This document shows positions 6,497 to 18,300 of a stretch of 64,000 nucleotides of DNA, in pieces. Position 1 is the stretch's first letter; each line of letters opens with the position of its first letter. The DNA lies in the NCBI GenBank assembly GCA_023334545.1, contig JAADVB010000071.1:1-64000 (forward strand). The letters are read 5' to 3'. Source of the stretch: Salisapilia sapeloensis CBS 127946 (Eukaryota > Protista > Oomycota). Below the pieces are notes generated by a model. The model ran no database searches and had not been told where the DNA came from. It was given only the letters and a program-made list of their open reading frames with translations. The translations under genes and the position numbers were made by a program.

Positions 6497-7627
6497 CGCA
6501 CGCTCATGTATTGAGTAAGGAAATTGACAAAAATGAGCTTGATAGCGGCCCAAGACTGGTCTCAATGCGTTATGTTACCAATTAAAAGCATTATTCTCAT
6601 GCGCACGCCCCACAGTTTTCTCTTACATCATCCATAGTCGTGACGGCGATGTATCACTACGTATGGTTTTCGCTTTATAGAGTAGAAATGAGGCAATGCT
6701 ATTCACCCAGAATCCTCGCTGTCATTGTTGCGGCGTTATAATGCCTCCAAGTAATGCTTTTGCTTCTTTTAGCATACATAATATGGCCTCTGACCCGACC
6801 TAGGGCAGATAAGTGCTTATGTATTCCCCATTTGCTGCAGGAAGCTAAATGTAAAACCGCTGAAAACTAGTAAAGACATGTGGTGTTACCCTGACAAATG
6901 ATTCAGGCACATCCTTGTGGAAACTTGAATAGATTGTGTACGTTCCTGTAGAATCTGCCAAAGTGGAGCGTTTGCTGACGAGTGTGAAACTCTACCACAG
7001 TCGACAAGGTCTGTTTAGAGGTTGTCGCTCAAATAATAAATTTAGTCTGGAGAATGCACGCCATCTCTGAGCGACGCTATAGCGTGTCTGACTCTTTGAC
7101 GAGTACCTATGGTCATGTTAATAAGGAATGCAAAGCAATGCTCTTCTGTAGATTGAATATCGGTACTGTTTCCATGAGAGTCAATGTGGGCATGTTGGTC
7201 TATAGATTAGTTCATGTCGCTGTCAAGCACTTGCCTTTGAAGTCATGTCTGCATTGAAGCAATTAAAACTTCTGTACATGACCATTGTCTTATATGGTCG
7301 AGGTCGGACTGGTTCATTCGATCCATGGAAGCAATCAGCTTTGTAAATAAAAGTATCTTTCACAACATTTAAAATATCTTTCCAAAATTTCAGAAATAAT
7401 ACCTAATTTCAGTGTAAAAAAATATTCATAATATTTATCTTTTTAAATTGGCTATTTTTGTTAATGCCTTATATTCCGCGGAATTCGATGCCTCTTTAGA
7501 TGCACAACATACTTTCATCCAATTAAAACTTACGAAATTGAATACTAGCCAATCAAAATCCTTGAAACTTCAACTTTTTAACCACAAATATTTTTAAGCA
7601 TCTTAGCGTCCGACACAGCTGCCCGTC

Positions 7628-8911
7628 ATGGCAATCGTGGAGAGCGCTCGCTGTGCCATCAAGGCTCTCGTCTTCTACTACGCTTCCTTGGCACACTATT
7701 GGCTTCGTCCGAATGCTACATATTCGAATTGCCCATTTTTCAAGGATGACCTGCATGCCAAAACGATGGTCTACGGCATCGCTCTGCTGCTGCCACTGTG
7801 GAGTAAGCCACACTACCGCCACCCGTCTTTCCAAACAGACTTGGTCACGAACCTGCGCAATGTTGCCGTGCCAGGAACAGGCCTGCCTCTCTCGTACGTC
7901 ACTTGCTCCCGCTTCCTACTCGTTCCATTCTTGCTTGTCGCGTATCCAGTCTTGTGCATCCTCGGTGCTCTCGTTGAAAATACCGATACGCTCACTCGAT
8001 CCGCTAGTGGAAGCGTTTCTTTCGCTGACTGCATCAGTCAGTTCTTCTTTCGCTTCCGCCAGTTGCTAGTGAACCCTCAGCATTGGTTTGGTTTCTGGCG
8101 TCTCAACTGCCACGCCGTCAGTCTCCACAGTCTAATGACCAATGCTGCTGGATATACTATGGAGAACAAGTGGGATTTCCTAGTTGAATGTGAAAAGCGA
8201 GGTATTGCCATTTCACCATTCATGAAAGAACCCAAGGCACTTGTGATTAAAGACCGGAATGAAGAAGGTGGCATGGGCATTTGCCAATTTGAGAATGCGT
8301 TCAGTGGAGGGGACTGGATCATTCAAGAGAAACTAGAGAACAGCTCTTTCTTGTCCGAATTGCTACCTGAGAATGCTCCTCTATCCACCTTCCGTCTCAT
8401 CACGGCTTCTAACAAGGCCGCTGGCTCGGATGGAGGCATCAAGACGCTCAGTTGTGTCTTCCGAGCAGGCATGCGGAATGCATCCACTGATCACAAGTCA
8501 GTGATGTTTGACGTGGACATGGATACGGGCGCCATCAAGCTCGGAACGACAAATACGCACTGGTATCGCCTCGGGCTTTTCCAGTTCGACACAAACGAGC
8601 TGTCAGTCGGACACGATCTGGAGATGCATCCGGACAACAATATCCAAATGACTGGTGTGACTATCCCAGTCATGCAAGAGATGAAGGAACTGTGTGAACG
8701 CGCCCACGCAGAGCTGATGGATGACGTTCCACTATGTGGCTGGGATGTTGCGCTAACCGACGACGGTCCGATGTTGTTGGAAGTGAACATATCGTGCAAT
8801 TTCTTCCGTGGCACTTTCGATCAGGACTATTACTTCAACTACATGGATAAACTCTTCCGTCATTGTGATGCTCTCCAGAGTGAAATAGTCGTAGAGAAGA
8901 AGGAAGCTTAG
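7628..8911 (+). CDS. ATP-grasp protein of the alpha-L-glutamate-ligase-related / sugar-transfer-associated (ATPgrasp_ST-like) family, with an N-terminal hydrophobic region
   Basis: Intronless 427-aa ORF with ATP-grasp motifs LVIKDRNEEGGMGI, WIIQEKLENSSFLSEL..LSTFRLIT, IPVMQEMKELCERAH..CGWDVALTDDGPMLLEVN. The hydrophobic stretch FLLVPFLLVAYPVLCILGALV lies at about aa 96-116. Confidence 0.8.
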   Translation: MAIVESARCAIKALVFYYASLAHYWLRPNATYSNCPFFKDDLHAKTMVYGIALLLPLWSKPHYRHPSFQTDLVTNLRNVAVPGTGLPLSYVTCSRFLLVPFLLVAYPVLCILGALVENTDTLTRSASGSVSFADCISQFFFRFRQLLVNPQHWFGFWRLNCHAVSLHSLMTNAAGYTMENKWDFLVECEKRGIAISPFMKEPKALVIKDRNEEGGMGICQFENAFSGGDWIIQEKLENSSFLSELLPENAPLSTFRLITASNKAAGSDGGIKTLSCVFRAGMRNASTDHKSVMFDVDMDTGAIKLGTTNTHWYRLGLFQFDTNELSVGHDLEMHPDNNIQMTGVTIPVMQEMKELCERAHAELMDDVPLCGWDVALTDDGPMLLEVNISCNFFRGTFDQDYYFNYMDKLFRHCDALQSEIVVEKKEA

Positions 8912-9387: not shown

Positions 9388-10838
9388 ATGTTTGCAAGGA
9401 GAGGTCGGCAAATGAGTACGCTCGCAGAGCGTGCTGCCCAGCGCGTCATTAAACGGATGAAGCCGACAATTGAGAACAACCCGAACCTGTGGCTCGGTGC
9501 TGATGCCATTGTAATATTTGCTTACTTGTGCTCTCAGTGCCACGACTTACGGCTTGCATGGAACTAGAACGAACCGACGATCTCGATTTTGGACCCAGCT
9601 CCTGGATACGCAGAGTTACTCGGTAGCAGTGCATCCAACAGTCAAGCCGATCCGTACGTACCATTGGAAGCATCCTGTCGCCTAATTATTCTCACACATG
9701 TACAGGGCAGTAGGAAACGAACCGAACGTGGCAATCAAGCATCTCCACGTGCCGTCGAATGAGCTCACGGATCCATTCTACCGTGTCCAAGAAGATCTGT
9801 CCGACATCTCATCTAGCATCCGCTCCATCCTCACTTCTGATGGCTCGGACCACCCAGTCCTGTCGGCCGTCTCGAGCTACTTTTTCGAACATGATGGCGG
9901 GAAGAAAGTGAGACCAGCGATGGTCCTACTCGTATCCAAAGCCGCCGAAGCCCATCGCAAGCAGATCGTCTCCAATGACCTTCCGTCCGAATTTTCGCCA
10001 GAGTTCGCCACAGCAGCACAGCGTCGACTAGCCGAGATCACCGAGATGATCCACACGGCGAGTCTGCTGCATGATGACGTGATTGACGAGGCAGATACTC
10101 GTCGTGGCGTGAAATCCGTGAACCGAGTCTTTGGTACCAAGCTGTCGATCTTGGCTGGAGACTTTTTACTCGCTCGATCGTCCGTCAGTCTAGCTCGCCT
10201 CCGGTCTTTAGAAACCGTAGAGCTCATGTCGACTGCGATTGAACACTTGGTAAAGGGAGAAGTGATGCAGATGAAGGACGTGGATGAAGACGGAGACATT
10301 TCGTTCTTTGAATACTACCTTCGAAAGAATTATTACAAGACCGGATCGCTCATGTCGAACAGTTGCCGAGCTGCTCTCGTCCTCGGTCATCATGATGATG
10401 CAGTCTGTGACCTCGGGTTTGCCTATGGGCGCCACATTGGTCTTGCTTTCCAGGTACGATACACGACGACCAGGAGAGGACATAACGACTGACTTTTGTC
10501 TGGAATAGTTGATCGATGATGTCTTGGACTACGAAGGCACGCAGACGGGAAAGCCGATGCTGGCGGACCTAAAGGCCGGGTTAGCGACTGCCCCGGTCAT
10601 TCTAGCCCAGGAAGAGTACCCTGTCCTTCGAAAACTTATTTCACGAAAGTTTAAGGAAGATGGTGACATTGAACAAGCGTCGGAGCTAGTGGAGAAGAGC
10701 TCTGGGCTTGAACGATCGAGGAGGTTGGCGACTGCCCAGGCAGAGTTGGCGTGTCAGGCAGCGATGCAATTCGCTCCATCAACTGCTCGGGATGCGCTCG
10801 TGCGACTTGCTCAAATTGTAGTCGAGCGATCCAAATAG
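9388..10838 (+). CDS. COQ1: Trans-polyprenyl (solanesyl/decaprenyl) diphosphate synthase for the ubiquinone side chain, spliced
   Basis: GGKKVRP, the first aspartate-rich motif LLHDDVIDEADTRRG, KTGSL, and the second motif FQ|LIDDVLDY across intron 10454-10508. A mitochondrial-type N-terminus (MFARRGRQMSTLAERAAQR) is reconstructed from the ATG at 9388; the 5' introns are less certain. Confidence 0.9.
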
Positions 10839-12917
10839 ATAGGGAAAATGCACAATCGTTTTTCTTGTTTTATGCGCTTGGTAGTGCTCGTCAAGTAGGA
10901 AAGTTTGTCGAGTTGGAAAGAGAAGCTCTTTGCCGTTGTCTTGATGAAGCAGACTTTTCAATTATTTATCTGAGGTTGTTATAGCAATGGCATTCCAGTT
11001 TGACGACACGATCGTCGATAAGGATGACAGTATCCTCTTTTATTACCTGCCACATGAGGCTATGATAGTCTAGTGTACATGGCTCTTGCTGAGCAGAGTC
11101 TACTTGGTTTGAATAGAAACTTGTATCGCTTGCTTCTGTTGTCGTAATGAATATACTATTGCTTTGATTGTGAATGAGCGAGATGAGTATTGCTTTAGCT
11201 GTTAAAGATATGAGGTATACTCCGTCCATTTAGATTATACGCGTGTGCTGCGAGTACTGGTCTGAAGTAGAAAGTACTTGTTTCACGCTTTCCATGAAGA
11301 TGCGAGTGAGAGATAAGTATGAAGCGGTATTAATTGGATTGTCAAGACATGAGCTACCTCAAAGAATGCCATGTTTTCCGTATCAACAGACTACTGAAAG
11401 TTACTTCTTCAGCATGGGAGCTGCATAGGCACCACTCCTGAAGAGAGCATTTCAAAAGGTATGTCACGCCCTCACCTCGTTCTGTTGACCCTTTCCACCT
11501 TGCAGGAAGTTGAGCACGAGTAGAAGACTGGCAAGGTAGGACAGAGTGTTTGCAACGTTAAAACGTTATTGCTGTTGCGTTATGACCGAAGTCTTTGTCA
11601 AGTTTCTACGTGACCATGTTCAACTTGTCAAGATATGATACTGATAATGTAGATGAGTGAGAACAAGAGCAAGCCAATTTCATAGCTCGTATAGAGAATC
11701 TGTAGAAGCTTACAAGAGAAGATTTGACGGCAGCAGGTATCCTACCAACCTAGTGTGGTTTTAGGTAGAATCTTGTTATGCCTTTAGCATGTTTTTCGTG
11801 AGCTTTGATGCCAAGGATGCCTACCTCATAATGACCAGCGTTATTGTAGCAAAGCTCCTCATGTTTCGGAAGTAGTGCAGTCTGATGGTAAGAAAATCGT
11901 GACTCTGTTCATCTTTCCATTGAGCTTGTAAGGCACGTGCGTCTTAAAAGTTGAAGGTTCATTCCTGTCTATCAGATCACTCATCTGGACTTCGCTTTTT
12001 TTAAAAGTTGCACCATCATTCATGTGTTTCTGCAAGCAGATCACTGCTTAGTTCCAAGCTAAAATCCACGAAAAGATGACAGTGTCTTCCATCCTTGTTT
12101 GGTTTTACGTGGGGGTTCCATCAAAGTTCGATGTAAGTCTACTCGATCGGATGGAGCCGATACGAGTACTTGTTGGATAAACTATAAGGCCATTTAAAAA
12201 GGGCTTTCTAGCGTGCTTTCGTAGTGTGCTGTCGTATGCGTATTATTCGTTTTCGTGTACGAGTGCGACGTTGCCAGACAGTTTCATATTTAAACAGAGT
12301 ATCTGCCCCATGGTGGGTGCATCTACTGCCAAAAGCCGGATGTGCTTTAAATTGGAAACGAACTATTGTCATAGAATACTGAAACGAAGTATTTCGCTGC
12401 ATCCCACAAAAATGCGCCGGCGTTGGCCTGTGCTGAGCCCACTCACACCAGGCAAGTAGTCAATTCCTCTCCTTCCCACTAGTATACATATAAAGGTTAT
12501 TGGAGGAATTCTTTTCATGATGCAGAGATTGTGTCGCACCGGAATGCTTGTACTCACCTACTACTTGCCAGATACCTTCGGCAGCTTTACTCCAACTCTG
12601 AGCGGACAAGATTTTATGCACGCAGATTGCTTGTGCTCGAAAAGGTTAGCAAGCAAACTCCAAGTTACCATACGGTTCGGATTGGTCCATAATCCAGCAT
12701 GCAGAGACGATCATTGGTACAAAACCAACATTTTCCATCACTGATTACGTTTAGACTTTCAACCCTATCCCCATCGATCGATCGAATCCACCTTTTGGCA
12801 TTTGGAAGAGCAATCGAATTTCCACTTCATTCTTGATCTTGCTGTGTTTCGCCAAAGCTCCAGCACAGCAGACGCCTCGATCACAACGCCCACGGCAGCT
12901 CTTCATTTGAATCGGAT

Positions 12918-15263
12918 ATGCTCTCGATTACCCAATTTCCTCGTCGATTCCCAGCGGTCAACAAGCGCCCGTTGGGCTCAAGTCTTGCACGCCGTGCCAC
13001 CCAGGCCGTCACGTGCACCTGGATGCGTCAAGAAGCCGCCTTGACTGATGGCTCATCCCACATGCCTTTTTCCACCCTTCGTAATCCTCCTAAGCAAGTG
13101 ATTGCAACGAAAGACTTGTCGACATCGCCCGTGTCTAGCATTGCTGTCAAGAATGCATGTCGCAAGAATGTTGGTTCATTGATACCAAACTTAACTTATT
13201 CCAGGTCGCGCTCGTCCACGGCGTCTCCATCCGCTGTTGCTTCCGAAGACGACACGTACCTCTATGGTGAACGTAGCGAGGACTGGTACACCACGTCCTC
13301 TAGCCCGAAAAGTAACCCAAACTTTCCTGGCATCGTCGATGGACACCTCACATCATTAAATATGCCCAATCTGGCAACCTGCTCTCGTCAGGAGATGCTA
13401 AACTACTTTGATAATACATGGGCGCTCACGGACGCGCTTTTCGCCAGTCTCCAAGGTGAAGAGGCGTTCCTCTCCGCTCCACCGCACGGTCTTCGTCATC
13501 CTCTCATCTTCTACTACGGCCATGCCACGAGCTTTTATGTGAACAAATTTCTTGTTTCTGGACTCATCGAGGAGCCTGTGAATGCCCACTACGAACATAT
13601 CTTTGAAGTTGGCGTTGACGAAATGCGGTGGGACGATATGAGCAAGAATGAAATGAACTGGCCAAAGGTTAGTGAAGTGCACGCGTATCGTAAGACCGTG
13701 TACAAATTGATTCGAGACATCATTGAGACTCATCCTGGTTTGAACGACGGACATGAGCTGATTGACGAAAACCACCCGCTGTGGGCACTTAACATGACGC
13801 TGGAGCACGACCGTATTCACCTCGAAACGTCTTCCATGCTCATGCAAGAGCACCCGCTGCACTTTGTCCGCAAGCCAGAGCTCCTTCCAGACTACCACAA
13901 GACTGCGTACCGGATGTCAGTAGCCAAGCACCCAACAGTCGGCGAAGACTACCCTGCGAATGAACTCATCCCTGTGCAAGGTGGACAAGTCAAGGTCGGA
14001 AAGCCTCGAGACTACCCGTCCTACGGATGGGACAATGAATACGGAGAGCGCACCGTTGATGCTCCCTCCTGCCACGCCACAAGAGACCTCATTTCGAACG
14101 GTCAGTTCTGGGAGTTCGTCGCTGATGGAGGCTACCTTGAGCGCTCCTACTGGAGTGAAGAAGGCTGGGGCTGGAGATGTTTCCGTAACACCAAGTGGCC
14201 GCAGTTCTGGATTGCAGATGGACCTGCGGGCAGCCACCAGTACAAGCTCCGAGCGTTGTTCGATGAGATTGAAATGCAGTGGGACTGGCCAGCACAAGTG
14301 AACTATCACGAAGCACAAGCTTTCTGTCGATGGAAGAACTTGCAGGATGGAAATACGCAAGAAAAGTTCTATCATGTGAACACGGAACCGATTCATCAAC
14401 TCATGCGCAATGGGTACGACAAGTCCGAGAATACCCAAAATGACATGAGTCTGCAGTCGTTGGAAAAGAACAAGTCTGTTGCCACACAACACCAGCGAAA
14501 TCTAAGTGTCTCCCACCTGTCATTCACACCTGTAGACTCTTTCCCAGCATCTGACAATGGGTTCCGTGACGTATTTGGTAACGCGTGGGAGTGGTGTGAA
14601 GACAGCTTCGCACCGTTGCATGGCTTCCGTGTTCACAAGTACTATGATGACTTTAGCTCCCCGTGTTTCGATGGCGAACACCAGGTGATCATGGGTGGAT
14701 CGTTCATCAGCAGTGGTGATAATGGCAGTAGCAAATTTGCTCGCTACCACTTCCGTCCACACTTTTTCCAACACGCTTCCTTCCGTCTCGTGTCACAGGA
14801 CATTGATGAGAAACACTTCATTACTTTGGCTACTACCGACGTGAATGCTCCTGAGCCTCACACCAAACCCGATCCGTTCCGTACGAGTGAACAAGTGCGT
14901 GTGGGTGTCACGGAAGATGAGCGACACAGCTACGAAACGCTCGTGGATGAAGTCCAGCGTCGCTCTGAGATGGCATTGAATGCCTTTGTACAGTCCATTG
15001 GTGATGCAGGCAATGACGAAAGTAGCTTCTTGGTTCGTGACGGCCTTGCAGGAGTGCAGCAACTGCGCGACCAGGTCGCTCCTGGTGAGTACCTCGTCGT
15101 CATCGTACCGGATGATGAAGTGTCCGAGATCGAATCCGTGCTTTCGGGTGAGTTCGACAAAGGCAAAGTGCAACGTGTTCCTGTCTTCCAGCCAGAGGAA
15201 GGTCAAGGCGGCGTGCTTTCTGCCCAGACTGCCATGGCTTGGAAAAGAAAAACCGTCGCGTAA
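12918..15263 (+). CDS. ovoA: 5-histidylcysteine sulfoxide synthase OvoA (ovothiol biosynthesis): DinB_2 + FGE-sulfatase domains with a degenerate C-terminal methyltransferase remnant
   Basis: OvoA-type signatures LRHPLIFYYGH, GVDEMRWDD, the iron motif HDRIHLETSS, YPSYGWDNEYG, GNAWEWCED, GGSFIS, RYHFRPHFFQHASFR. The N-terminal extension is rich in Arg/Ser. Confidence 0.9.
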   Translation: MLSITQFPRRFPAVNKRPLGSSLARRATQAVTCTWMRQEAALTDGSSHMPFSTLRNPPKQVIATKDLSTSPVSSIAVKNACRKNVGSLIPNLTYSRSRSSTASPSAVASEDDTYLYGERSEDWYTTSSSPKSNPNFPGIVDGHLTSLNMPNLATCSRQEMLNYFDNTWALTDALFASLQGEEAFLSAPPHGLRHPLIFYYGHATSFYVNKFLVSGLIEEPVNAHYEHIFEVGVDEMRWDDMSKNEMNWPKVSEVHAYRKTVYKLIRDIIETHPGLNDGHELIDENHPLWALNMTLEHDRIHLETSSMLMQEHPLHFVRKPELLPDYHKTAYRMSVAKHPTVGEDYPANELIPVQGGQVKVGKPRDYPSYGWDNEYGERTVDAPSCHATRDLISNGQFWEFVADGGYLERSYWSEEGWGWRCFRNTKWPQFWIADGPAGSHQYKLRALFDEIEMQWDWPAQVNYHEAQAFCRWKNLQDGNTQEKFYHVNTEPIHQLMRNGYDKSENTQNDMSLQSLEKNKSVATQHQRNLSVSHLSFTPVDSFPASDNGFRDVFGNAWEWCEDSFAPLHGFRVHKYYDDFSSPCFDGEHQVIMGGSFISSGDNGSSKFARYHFRPHFFQHASFRLVSQDIDEKHFITLATTDVNAPEPHTKPDPFRTSEQVRVGVTEDERHSYETLVDEVQRRSEMALNAFVQSIGDAGNDESSFLVRDGLAGVQQLRDQVAPGEYLVVIVPDDEVSEIESVLSGEFDKGKVQRVPVFQPEEGQGGVLSAQTAMAWKRKTVA

Positions 15264-15375
15264 AGCGTACTAACGTCCTACTGACAGACATTCTTGCTCT
15301 TTCATAACACGACCTTGCAAAACAATGATGCTTTTACTCTACTTTATCATCTTTATACTTGCCAACCACGTTCAG

Positions 15376-18300
15376 TTAAGCATCTACACTTTCTCTTCCA
15401 GCAGGACATGCAGAGCTAGCGAATGGGCAGAATGCACATTCGATGAACTGAGGCTCTGGTGCAAACTCACCTCGACGCATACGCTTGACGATATCCTCTA
15501 CCATTGTTTCCACTTCCTCAGCAAGATGAGGTTCATGCTCAATTCGATCATTTGCCTTTCCTAAGCTCTCGTCCTGCCTTCCAATAACTTCGACTGTTGC
15601 TGCATGAGGTGCTTGGCCGAATACTTTTTCGTACGCATACATATACAGCTTTAGCTGCAGTCGATCCTTACGGATGGCAGCTGCCCCTCTTGCCGTGCCG
15701 TTCATGCTTGTCTTGAATTCCTGGATAAATGCTTTGCCAGTTTTGCGATCACGATCTACGCGGTCCCATACGCCTTTCAATTGGACACCTGCTGCATCTA
15801 TGTCGACCGTAAAAGGTTCTTCCACTAGCTCCACGTGTGCATCTCGATGACGAGTACAAAAGGATAGAATATCACTCTCTCCTTGCTGCACCATCGTATC
15901 CACTTGATCTGGACCCCAGAGCAAGTAGTTATCTGTTTCCAGTGTCTTACGGAAGGTGCTAAAGGCTGCGTCAACTGCTTGATCAAAATCGGAATTTTCA
16001 AGCGAAAACATAGATGAAAACGTTGCAACACCTTCATGTACAGCTCGACCATACATCATGGCAGTGTTAGGTGGCGTCGGTAGCTTCATCACTCGACTCA
16101 GATAGTACCGATGAGGACATCGCAAGTACTCTTGTACTTGTGTAAAAGACAAATGGGACGGTTCATAGCTATCAAAGTGTCTACATCGTTGGTCCATTTC
16201 GTCCTTACTTTCAATATCCTTTGGCACGTGGATTAACTCTTGGTCTTGTAGAAAGTAATCTTGAAAGTATCGACTCACTTGCTCCTTCTTCGACTTACCA
16301 TTCGAAATATCTGCATAGGACACAACTACGCGTTTCGTTGGAAGCAAAAGTGCTTGTGCTAGTAGATCGTCACAACTGTTTAAAAGTTGCTGCCGATTCT
16401 GAATCGGCTTTGGTGCTTTCATCAAAGCCTCTGGAAGTGGTAACGTTACGCGACTTAACCGACCAGGGAACTTGTTGTCCTTCATACACGCTAGAAACAG
16501 CGTCGACGTTTTCTCTACCACCGTTAACATCGATCGCATGGATAGAGGCAACACACGAATCGTCGGATATGTCGATTTTTCCACTGATGACGAGTCGTAT
16601 AGAGGAGCTGGTACCCAAGCTGAGCGTAGTTTCATGAGGTACGGAACTACCAGCGGTGACTGATTACTTTGCACCATCCTCTCCGCAGTTTCAATTTCAC
16701 GAAGAAAGTCAGCAACAGCCACAACCTCCCGTTCTTCTTCACTGGTCGATGGGTCCAGAAGTTCTTTCGTACCACCTACACTGTCTGTGAGTAGACTAGA
16801 GATACAACATTAGAGATAGAAAGACGTACCGGTGGCATCCAAGAAGGTTTGAATGATCTCCTGAACAGACATTTGATGACACTTATCTCTTAAGTCGTCA
16901 ATTAGAGACAGAAACGCCGATGTTTTTTGTACTCCATCTTGAATCACATCTTCACCGAGTGCTAATCGTCCATCATTCGAGTACGAAGAGTACTTAATAG
17001 AAGCTCCGTTACTTTTGACAAATTTAGATAGTACGACTGACAGATCGACAGAGCTTTTGCTCTCGTGTTCCATCAGTACTGACAAGAGACTTGGTGGAAA
17101 GCTAAAGGATGGTGATCGGAGGACGTTGTATAGATAACTAGAGTCACTTGGATAACAAAGAGCGACGAGAAGAGAGTAAATCGTGTTCACACGAGGCTAT
17201 GAAAAGTAGATTTAGCATTCTCAAGACCAGAATAGAGTAATGTAAACGTACCTCATCGAAAAGGTGATTGTCACCACGAAGACCATAGCCTTCTACGTGA
17301 ATACCCTGCTGGACTAAACTTCTCGAGACTCTCCGCACGTCCGGAAAACTCGGACACATGACCACCATCGATGCGTCATCACCTTTTCCATCATCCCATA
17401 GTTCCTTTATACGCTTTACGATGCCTCTTACTTCGTCCTCTGGTGTTGCATACGCAGAATATTCTACTCTAGGTCGATGCGAACTGTTATCGTCCATCAG
17501 ATCTTGAGTGGTACGAATCTGATGCTTCTCTTGAAGTACTGAAGCAAGCCTTGTCCCATTGGATTGATCTGTTTCAGACTCCACTTCAAACGTCGTAAGC
17601 TGTTGGATAGTCTTTGCTGAAGTTATATCTGCTATCAGATCGATCATGGCAGGAGTCATGGCCTGTAGATGTTCCACGGCGATATCTGTGTACTCTGTCA
17701 TGACAGCCTTTAATAGCTCTTGCTCCTGTAATGTCTGAAGCACTACTCCATCCCATGTCGTTAGATTCTGATCATCTAGTAACGTACTAAGAGCATGATA
17801 AGCTGCAGCTAACTTTGCATCGTCCAGTCCATTGTCCGTGCTCTGCAAGTCTTTCGATTCGGACGCGAAGGAGCTATAGGCCGACGGAGAGATACCCTGC
17901 TGCTGTAGCAGCTGGAAGAATTTGACTAGTTCCTGTACAAAGCGACGCGTCTGCATCGAATCAGGAGATGTCCGGAAGCTTGGATGAAGGTCATGAAAGG
18001 CAGGTAAGGACTGCAGATTGTGAAGTATGAAGGCGCCAAGCTTGGAACTTGATACCATACGCTAAAAACAAATGAGTCGTGGAATCGATAGCGTGGTAAG
18101 CAAGAAGGAATGTACCCTATTTCGTCCACCTTCCTCCAATATCAATTGACACCACTCATGTAGTCCGAGAACGGTGTGTCCCTGTCGTTCAAGTGCATAC
18201 AGTGGCATACGATCTTCTAGAGAGCGAGAAAGCGGTGCATCCTCACTGGACGTAGCTGTCAGCACTAGCCACCGCTTCTTATCTGCCTTTATTTCGTCTG

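Follow-up and report, generated by a model that had tools for sequence, protein, structure and literature searches.

The closest described relatives of the gene reported here are the canonical, bifunctional OvoA enzymes, such as those of Erwinia tasmaniensis and Hydrogenimonas thermophila (OvoA_Th2, PDB 8KHQ), in which a sulfoxide synthase made up of DinB and FGE domains is followed by a C-terminal methyltransferase domain. Forms described as having no methyltransferase domain are also known; they either work alongside a stand-alone N-methyltransferase, OvoM or OvsM (PDB 9BXL, 9BXH), or, as OvoA-like proteins of Bacteroidetes such as Proteiniphilum, belong to a 5-thiohistidine N-acetyltransferase pathway. 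A further variant is AshA, of the actinothioneine pathway of Amycolatopsis, which reportedly has a divergent, vestigial OvoA-like methyltransferase domain at its C-terminus for which no methylation was observed, possesses a novel motif in its active site, makes 2-thiohistidine, and is encoded in a cluster with an ATP-grasp enzyme of the RimK type (J Am Chem Soc 2026, PMC13674229). This study concerns an OvoA gene of the oomycete Salisapilia sapeloensis CBS 127946, located in a stretch of 64,000 nucleotides (positions 1 to 64,000 of contig JAADVB010000071.1, GenBank assembly GCA_023334545.1) that is called the window throughout, and specifically the unusual C-terminal tail of the encoded protein.

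The most probable interpretation, to which a probability of roughly 0.7 can be attached, is that this is an oomycete OvoA with an intact sulfoxide synthase, in which the methyltransferase was reduced once, and anciently, to a selected pseudo-methyltransferase of about 115 residues that has been kept as a structural module. Like canonical OvoA, the oomycete protein has the DinB and FGE domains, the metal triad, the catalytic tyrosine, and the cysteine-binding residues, and it is colinear with the canonical form in the linker and in the final four elements of secondary structure in the methyltransferase. Unlike canonical OvoA, it is without the S-adenosylmethionine (SAM)-binding half of that domain and a dimer hairpin of 23 residues (8KHQ 640-662), and it adds a disordered N-terminal extension of about 115 residues.

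With the OvoAs of the OvoM/OvsM systems and of Bacteroidetes it would share a synthase without an active methyltransferase, methylation being outsourced or omitted, although inactivity of the oomycete form is a prediction. Those proteins are described as being without the domain, whereas oomycetes appear to have kept a folded, selected remnant of it, and the oomycete lineage differs further in being eukaryotic, with the state fixed across an entire class. AshA resembles the oomycete protein as an OvoA-derived nonheme iron sulfoxide synthase (NHISS) with a methyltransferase-derived C-terminal domain, but in the oomycete protein the OvoA pocket residues are retained, along with only half of the methyltransferase fold, and the features described for AshA also set the two apart. 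The surprise is moderate, not deep, because OvoAs without a methyltransferase and the vestigial domain of AshA are already known in bacteria.

The sulfoxide synthase and its transcript

The coding sequence occupies positions 12918..15263 of the window (781 residues and a stop codon) on the + strand, where all features of the gene given below also lie, and was delimited from the list of open reading frames, the match to TIGR04344, and oomycete orthologues that cover 99-100% of it. A first-pass annotation, made from the sequence alone, had proposed that this reading frame encodes OvoA, and the family searches bore this out. TIGR04344 (ovoA_Nterm, an equivalog) scored 568 bits, above its curated cut-off of 400, matching residues 149-625 to model positions 2-444 of 444, and together with the Pfam domains and a structure match by VIA it defines a 5-histidylcysteine sulfoxide synthase region at 13362..14792. 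Within this region, the Pfam domains DinB_2 and FGE-sulfatase cover residues 164-304 (13407-13829) and 348-615 (13959-14762), respectively, and a scan of the full protein against Pfam and NCBIfam gave no family match beyond residue 625.

Residues 157-632 aligned to OvoA_Th2 by phmmer (E 2e-95), and functional residues were mapped through this alignment, the chain numbering of 8KHQ agreeing with the residues named in the structure paper. The iron triad recognized in the first-pass annotation is indeed kept, with H202 (in YGH, 13521..13523), H297, and H301 (both in HDRIH, 13806-13808 and 13818-13820) corresponding to H71, H162, and H166 of OvoA_Th2. The tyrosine of RYHF had been put forward as the catalytic one, but it is Y576, in YYDDF (14643..14645), that aligns with the catalytic Y406, while Y610 of RYHF is a pocket position, occupied by Y or F in all OvoAs. 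The cysteine-binding residues R193 and Y199 match R62 and Y68, and F579 matches F409. All of these metal, catalytic, and cysteine-binding residues, F579 included, are invariant throughout the 85 OvoAs aligned (31 from oomycetes and 54 others). A full-length AlphaFold model (predicted local distance difference test, pLDDT, 84.3; predicted template modelling score, pTM, 0.80) matched 8KHQ with a VIA Z of 43.2 over 558 residues, model residues 137-780 aligning to chain residues 9-709. To judge from its sequence, the gene product is an expressed, intact oomycete OvoA sulfoxide synthase, and C5 coupling is the predicted reaction.

A different reaction has to be weighed here, namely that the enzyme is not a C5 synthase but resembles EgtB-IV (PDB 8VIH/8VIG) or AshA, giving 2-thio products that might feed a nearby ATP-grasp ligase for synthesis of a thiohistidine dipeptide. 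EgtB-IV, which has an OvoA-like catalytic domain without a methyltransferase domain, matches the catalytic part of the window protein nearly as well as OvoA_Th2 does (312 vs 324 bits; VIA Z 42.9 vs 43.2, the values for EgtB-IV being about 42.7-42.9). AshA too has a vestigial methyltransferase domain, bacterial clusters of NHISS and ATP-grasp genes make thiohistidine dipeptides (PMC13674229), and an ATP-grasp gene is present in the window 4 kb upstream of OvoA (7628-8911).

The histidine-pocket positions point the other way. Y610-H611-F612 (in RYHF, 14745..14753) align with Y439-A440-F441 of OvoA_Th2 and with the N-W-F of EgtB-IV, and in the 85-sequence alignment the triplet is Y/F-H-F in oomycete and methyltransferase-bearing OvoAs alike, those of diatoms included. 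On this inferred mapping of positions, the pocket would belong, among the published composite motifs, with the histidine/OvoA type and not with the hercynine type. Membership of EgtB-IV was rejected, as EgtB-IV has the N-W-F hercynine pocket and ends right after the FGE domain, whereas the window protein has Y-H-F and a tail of 158 residues. In addition, the ATP-grasp gene is of the sugar-transfer-associated type (PF14397, E 2e-14), not RimK-like, and neither Pythium oligandrum, Phytophthora ramorum, nor Aphanomyces astaci has such a gene within 10 kb of OvoA, which leaves the analogy to NHISS-ATP-grasp dipeptide clusters unsupported. An enzyme forming 2-thio products is accordingly an improbable alternative.

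The OvoA mRNA is unspliced and extends over 12777..15338, with approximate ends, as judged from transcriptome contigs. Those assembled from four runs of one organism (12777-15328 and 12802-15338) showed zero joints or indels in a comparison over 11800-16900, and a third contig (12847-15287), representing a relative of about 94% identity, differed by 137 substitutions and 0 indels. Word depth was 160-220 for the OvoA contigs and about one eighth of this (21-23) for the neighbouring gene, a helicase/nuclease-like gene at 15376-18058 on the - strand. The contigs derive from RNA, because a 54-nt intron of this neighbour (16774-16827) is spliced out in them. The OvoA mRNA contigs end about 70 nt past the stop codon (15261-15263), and the end of the convergent gene lies 113 nt downstream of it. 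Given this ending and the colinearity of mRNA and genome, no missing exon can restore motif I of the methyltransferase, and so a missing exon, which the first-pass annotation had considered, is ruled out, as is an assembly error. Orthologues in Phytophthora are also intronless open reading frames that are followed by a convergent gene.

The top database relatives are all from oomycetes (Globisporangium, Pythium, Phytophthora, Lagenidium, Bremia, Peronospora, Aphanomyces, Saprolegnia, Achlya, and Thraustotheca). They are about 770-790 residues long, share 47-59% identity with the window protein at 99-100% coverage in full-length models, and carry DinB_2 and FGE-sulfatase as their only Pfam domains; their database names are limited to sulfatase-modifying-factor domain protein or hypothetical protein. 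Next in rank are canonical OvoAs of bacteria, diatoms, dinoflagellates, and choanoflagellates, which cover about 67% of the query and have methyltransferase Pfam families.

The C-terminal tail and its descent

Beyond the last FGE motif (..QHASFR, residue 623) there are 158 residues in the window protein and 137-173 in oomycete proteins with a complete C-terminus, compared with 268-318 in canonical OvoAs. The short tail reported in the first-pass annotation (14860-15263, which is residues 648-781) is therefore real. It starts with a conserved linker, LATTDVNAPxP..PFR (residues 624-665, 14787..14912), that resembles the linker of Monosiga OvoA and in which T639, P647, and R655 are invariant among oomycetes. 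The pseudo-methyltransferase domain follows (residues 666-781, 14913..15260), as delimited from AlphaFold2 (AF2) models and from VIA and Foldseek searches.

When 34 oomycete tails were compared with 73 canonical methyltransferase domains using hhalign, a single match was obtained, between tail positions 93-156 (residues 716-779, 15063..15254) and methyltransferase positions 190-277, with a probability of 94.2% (E 1.1e-7, P 7e-8) and a gap of 23 residues on the oomycete side. The score of 55.8 compares with 15.1 for the reversed alignment and with at most 19.5 in 30 column shuffles. In scans of each tail against NCBIfam, TIGR04345 (ovoA_Cterm, putative 4-mercaptohistidine N1-methyltransferase) was weakly matched by 16 of the 34 (best E 0.0021), and every other family by at most one; a Pfam scan of the oomycete tails matched no methyltransferase family. 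Four residues, G723, P755, E760, and W775, are common to oomycete tails and canonical OvoAs at colinear positions. The matched segment corresponds to beta5-alphaE-beta6-beta7 of the methyltransferase, and three of the likenesses that had been picked out by eye (LRDQVAPGEYLVVIVP, IESVLSGEF, and RVPVF...AMAWKRK) all fall inside it. A fourth, HSYETLVDE, taken for the start of the methyltransferase, did not survive the comparison, with E values of 0.09-0.36 for the first 95 tail residues and no conservation of Y-E-T in other oomycetes. At the level of sequence profiles, descent of the tail from the OvoA methyltransferase is confirmed, the supported segment being its last 64 residues.

In 8KHQ numbering, the columns kept by hhalign are 625-639 (motif III and strand 5) and 663-707 (helix E and strands 6 and 7), and the 23-residue gap between them is W640-K662. 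The stretch from motif I to motif II, comprising strands 1-4 and the lid insertion (about 125 residues), is deleted or unrecognisable. A single internal deletion, as first envisaged, does not account for this pattern, which needs at least two gaps, one for the half with motifs I and II and one for the 23 residues. As the first-pass annotation noted, motif I is absent: no G-x-G-x-G sequence was found, the aligned region reading FLVRDGLAG in the window and being gapped in Saprolegniales. The region of strand 2, with its acidic residue, is deleted in the tail alignment. The window protein does not have a complete C-terminal SAM-dependent methyltransferase domain, there being no match to TIGR04345 or to a methyltransferase Pfam family in its 158 residues.

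In class I methyltransferases, canonical SAM binding needs the glycine loop, the acidic residue of strand 2, and the strand 4 region. As these are absent from the tail, canonical SAM binding would not be possible, which argues for a loss of methyltransferase activity, and methyl transfer by the tail is predicted to be very unlikely. This agrees with the earlier proposal of a methyltransferase-derived domain that has lost its SAM-binding half, so that no methylation by the protein alone is predicted. The SAM-binding half that the reduction would have removed, or changed beyond recognition, comprises strand 1 (motif I), strand 2 (the acidic ribose ligand), the lid insertion, and strands 3-4 (motif II), and the 23-residue hairpin after strand 5 is missing as well. 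The remainder would consist of strand 5, helix E, and strands 6-7, preceded by a long helix and by one strand-helix unit whose origin is uncertain.

An AF2 model of the tail alone, made with the oomycete alignment, had a pLDDT of 85.4, with values above 90 from about tail residue 45 onward. Its elements are a helix (669-695), a strand (703-706), a helix (709-719), a strand (725-730, YLVVIV), a helix (732-742), and two strands (746-760 and 764-777) that form a long beta-hairpin. The first helix is 30 residues long in this model, and the same elements recur in the full-length model. The AF2 models thus contain four strands and three helices where a class I methyltransferase has a seven-stranded sheet (order 3-2-1-4-5-7-6), and a complete Rossmann fold, for which the first-pass annotation had suggested looking with AlphaFold, was not found.

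Structure searches gave a consistent if less decisive picture. Foldseek returned no match below E 1e-3 with the tail model; Alba ranked first, chains of 8KHQ second, fourth, and fifth, and the stand-alone ovothiol methyltransferase OvoM sixth. When 48,161 chains were searched exhaustively with VIA, the methyltransferase domain of OvoA_Th2 came joint first (Z 7.5, 115 residues aligned, chain 464-708), tied with the TusA-like YeeD domain (Z 7.5, 70 residues, 1.9 A), and most of the next 48 matches were class I methyltransferases, OvsM among them. The modelled structure supports the sequence evidence for methyltransferase descent without proving it, because the Z values are in the range that the tool calls middling.

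The same searches raise the alternative that the tail is unrelated to the methyltransferase, and is instead a small alpha/beta domain of TusA/YeeD-like or Alba-like type that was gained after complete loss of the original domain. YeeD/TusA-like chains do tie for the best Z (7.5-7.8) and have the lowest root-mean-square deviation (1.9 A over 70 residues), and Alba heads the Foldseek ranking. However, the profile homology, with its controls, is specific to the C-terminus of the OvoA methyltransferase, matches to TIGR04345 recur, and the four shared residues are colinear with those of canonical OvoAs. The 34 tails have no conserved cysteine, hence no TusA-type CPxP at the start of helix 1, and a TusA/YeeD sulfur carrier was rejected, the likeness being at the level of fold only. 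Gain of an unrelated domain can be given hardly any weight. As an observation in its own right, the remnant (tail residues 69-156) superposes on TusA/YeeD sulfur-carrier domains, with 1.9 A over 70 residues, and also on Alba; in the models, halving the class I methyltransferase fold leaves a beta-alpha-beta-alpha-beta-beta sandwich of TusA/Alba-like type.

Age, selection and role of the tail

In a maximum-likelihood tree built from the catalytic region (517 columns; 85 sequences, 31 of them from oomycetes), the oomycete OvoAs, all of which are short-tailed, formed a single clade with a Shimodaira-Hasegawa-like approximate likelihood ratio test (SH-aLRT) value of 100. Saprolegniales were sister to the other oomycetes, and the window sequence formed an early, long branch on the peronosporalean side. 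Four further short-tailed sequences were dispersed among methyltransferase-bearing OvoAs, and look like fragments or independent events. Pairwise ratios of nonsynonymous to synonymous substitution (dN/dS, Nei-Gojobori), calculated by region for five Phytophthora species, were 0.05-0.07 for the catalytic region, 0.04-0.16 for the linker, 0.07-0.18 for the folded tail, and 0.28-0.57 for the N-terminal extension. By this measure the tail is a selected domain under purifying selection, not debris. The pattern is consistent with a single reduction that would have preceded the split of Saprolegniales and Peronosporales, after which the remnant would have been maintained by purifying selection.

Here the results departed from the first-pass annotation, which had described the tail as vestigial and the pathway as caught mid-loss. 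In favour of a decaying remnant are the absence of motifs I and II, a tail of half the normal length, and the divergence of the window's own tail, which is too great for a match to TIGR04345. Nevertheless, the same architecture is present in 31/31 oomycete orthologues, the predicted tail fold is confident, the tail dN/dS is near that of the catalytic domain and far under that of the N-terminal extension, and the transcript of the relative of about 94% identity is free of indels. A lineage in the midst of losing its methyltransferase was rejected because all 31 oomycete OvoAs, in one clade, share the tail, with low tail dN/dS, and it is now a very improbable explanation. Overall, the original observation was partly confirmed and its interpretation partly supported.

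A role for the remnant is suggested by the crystal structure of OvoA_Th2 (PDB 8KHQ), in which the two methyltransferase domains are the centre of the dimer. In one interface the C-terminal strands (T690-Q700) pair in antiparallel fashion, R692 and D682' forming a salt bridge, and the other consists of the hairpin G653-K662 and its flanks, inserted into the catalytic domain of the partner. Residues 761-771 of the window protein align to T690-Q700, and the model puts them within and just before the last strand (764-777). As the last strand of the remnant corresponds to the strand that pairs in the OvoA_Th2 dimer, a structural role seems reasonable, and the remnant may have been kept, without methyl transfer, as a module for stability or, most likely, dimerisation.

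Several points weigh against the reading of the tail as a methyltransferase remnant kept for its structure. The window's own tail has no match to TIGR04345 at E values up to 10, being too diverged, and the first 95 or so tail residues have no detectable relative in local, sub-alignment, or global hhalign comparisons. The strand at 703-706 was assigned to strand 1, 3, or 4 by the three alignments compared. The structural Z of the tail is middling (7.5-7.9), and tied with those of small alpha/beta folds of the TusA/YeeD-like and Alba-like kinds. The interface hairpin of 8KHQ falls exactly in the oomycete gap 640-662, which means that oomycetes have lost the other half of the dimer interface seen in OvoA_Th2 and that dimerisation through the remnant is not assured. 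Lastly, the searchable literature contains no biochemical data on any oomycete OvoA.

If the tail does not methylate, oomycetes might still make ovothiol A by a split pathway, using a separate, stand-alone OvoM-like methyltransferase. The pseudo-methyltransferase tail may in that case be the docking partner of this enzyme, because canonical methyltransferase domains pair through the last strand, which is retained. There is precedent in the OvoAs that act with a stand-alone OvoM or OvsM (PDB 9BXL, 9BXH), the structural matches of the tail include pairs of inactive and active methyltransferases such as TRM6-TRM61, and stand-alone methyltransferases of OvoA type occur in diatoms, sharks, and sea urchin, among the matches listed. 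Two profile word searches for such an enzyme, one with the full methyltransferase domain and the other with a core of 153-179 residues, gave no oomycete protein in the best 120 of 350 and of 1402 matches, and a search of the Atlas for a stand-alone methyltransferase gave bacterial and green-algal clusters only. It counts against the split pathway that Pythium oligandrum, Phytophthora ramorum, and Aphanomyces astaci are all without a methyltransferase gene within 10 kb of OvoA. The split pathway is a realistic prospect at somewhat less than even odds. Separately, stand-alone proteins of the OvoA-methyltransferase type, of about 275-308 residues, are annotated in sharks/rays, diatoms, and sea urchin among the matches listed (P0301, P0317, P0328, P0335, P0340, P0265, P0274, P0319), and some of these, being on very long contigs, may not be fragments.

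Under the preferred reading, of an intact synthase with a structural pseudo-methyltransferase, OvoA alone would produce 5-histidylcysteine sulfoxide, and a C-S lyase would convert this to 5-thiohistidine. Methylation at N-pi, if there is any in oomycetes, would be carried out by a separate enzyme, and otherwise the pathway would end at 5-thiohistidine or a derivative of it. A class-wide combination of intact synthase and SAM-blind remnant thus predicts either that the product is one of these compounds or that a separate methyltransferase exists. A more far-reaching idea is that oomycetes have a split or shortened ovothiol pathway in which the tail is a selected module for docking as well as dimerisation. 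It comes in two versions: an OvoM-like partner could be recruited through the old strand-7 interface, as an inactive/active pair like TRM6-TRM61, or there could be no partner, with unmethylated 5-thiohistidine or a new derivative serving the whole class as a redox thiol. This proposal is tentative and less likely than not to be right, but if it were true it would concern a whole class of plant and animal pathogens.

Thiols of the ovothiol type guard eggs and pathogens from oxidative stress. In the searchable literature (open-access papers), nothing relevant was found on ovothiol or mercaptohistidine in oomycetes, thiohistidine metabolism was without mention for members such as Phytophthora, Pythium, Saprolegnia, and Aphanomyces, and no description of this pseudo-methyltransferase was found. 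The oomycete tail may also be viewed as a natural experiment on which part of a class I methyltransferase survives alone under selection, and it bears on pseudoenzyme domains that are retained for assembly.

The N-terminal extension and neighbouring genes

The N-terminal extension (residues 1-115, 12918..13262) is predicted to be disordered, with a pLDDT of about 33 for residues 1-108. Its extreme N-terminus, MLxITxFPRRFPTxxKR (residues 1-17, 12918-12970), is conserved in all oomycete orthologues, from Saprolegnia to Phytophthora, and looks like a targeting signal. The roughly 90 residues that follow it are disordered and fast-evolving.

Upstream of OvoA in the window is a polyprenyl synthase gene (PF00348, 9698-10838), the open reading frame of which breaks at 10492/10509, a short intron being the probable cause. 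A polyprenyl synthase gene is also found directly upstream of OvoA in Pythium oligandrum (7249-8841 of the examined stretch) and at a distance of 3 kb in Phytophthora ramorum (15211-16880 of the examined stretch). A mini-cluster of ATP-grasp, polyprenyl synthase, and OvoA genes was considered and rejected, as the polyprenyl synthase stays linked to OvoA but the ATP-grasp gene does not. In one gene model of Pythium brassicae (P0019), the polyprenyl synthase is fused to OvoA.

Aphanomyces astaci has two OvoA genes, each of 774 residues, that are inverted and 2 kb apart (10001-12325 on the + strand and 14265-16589 on the - strand of the examined stretch). In five Phytophthora species, the neighbour that converges on OvoA (in one example at 12512-14887 of the examined stretch) encodes an NmrA/NAD_binding_10 protein of about 770-790 residues, a case of conserved synteny. 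Upstream of OvoA in the window, an RNA contig of low depth (2.5), within 12309-12597, joins 12447 to 12568 and skips 120 nt, and reflects either a minor unannotated transcript or noise.

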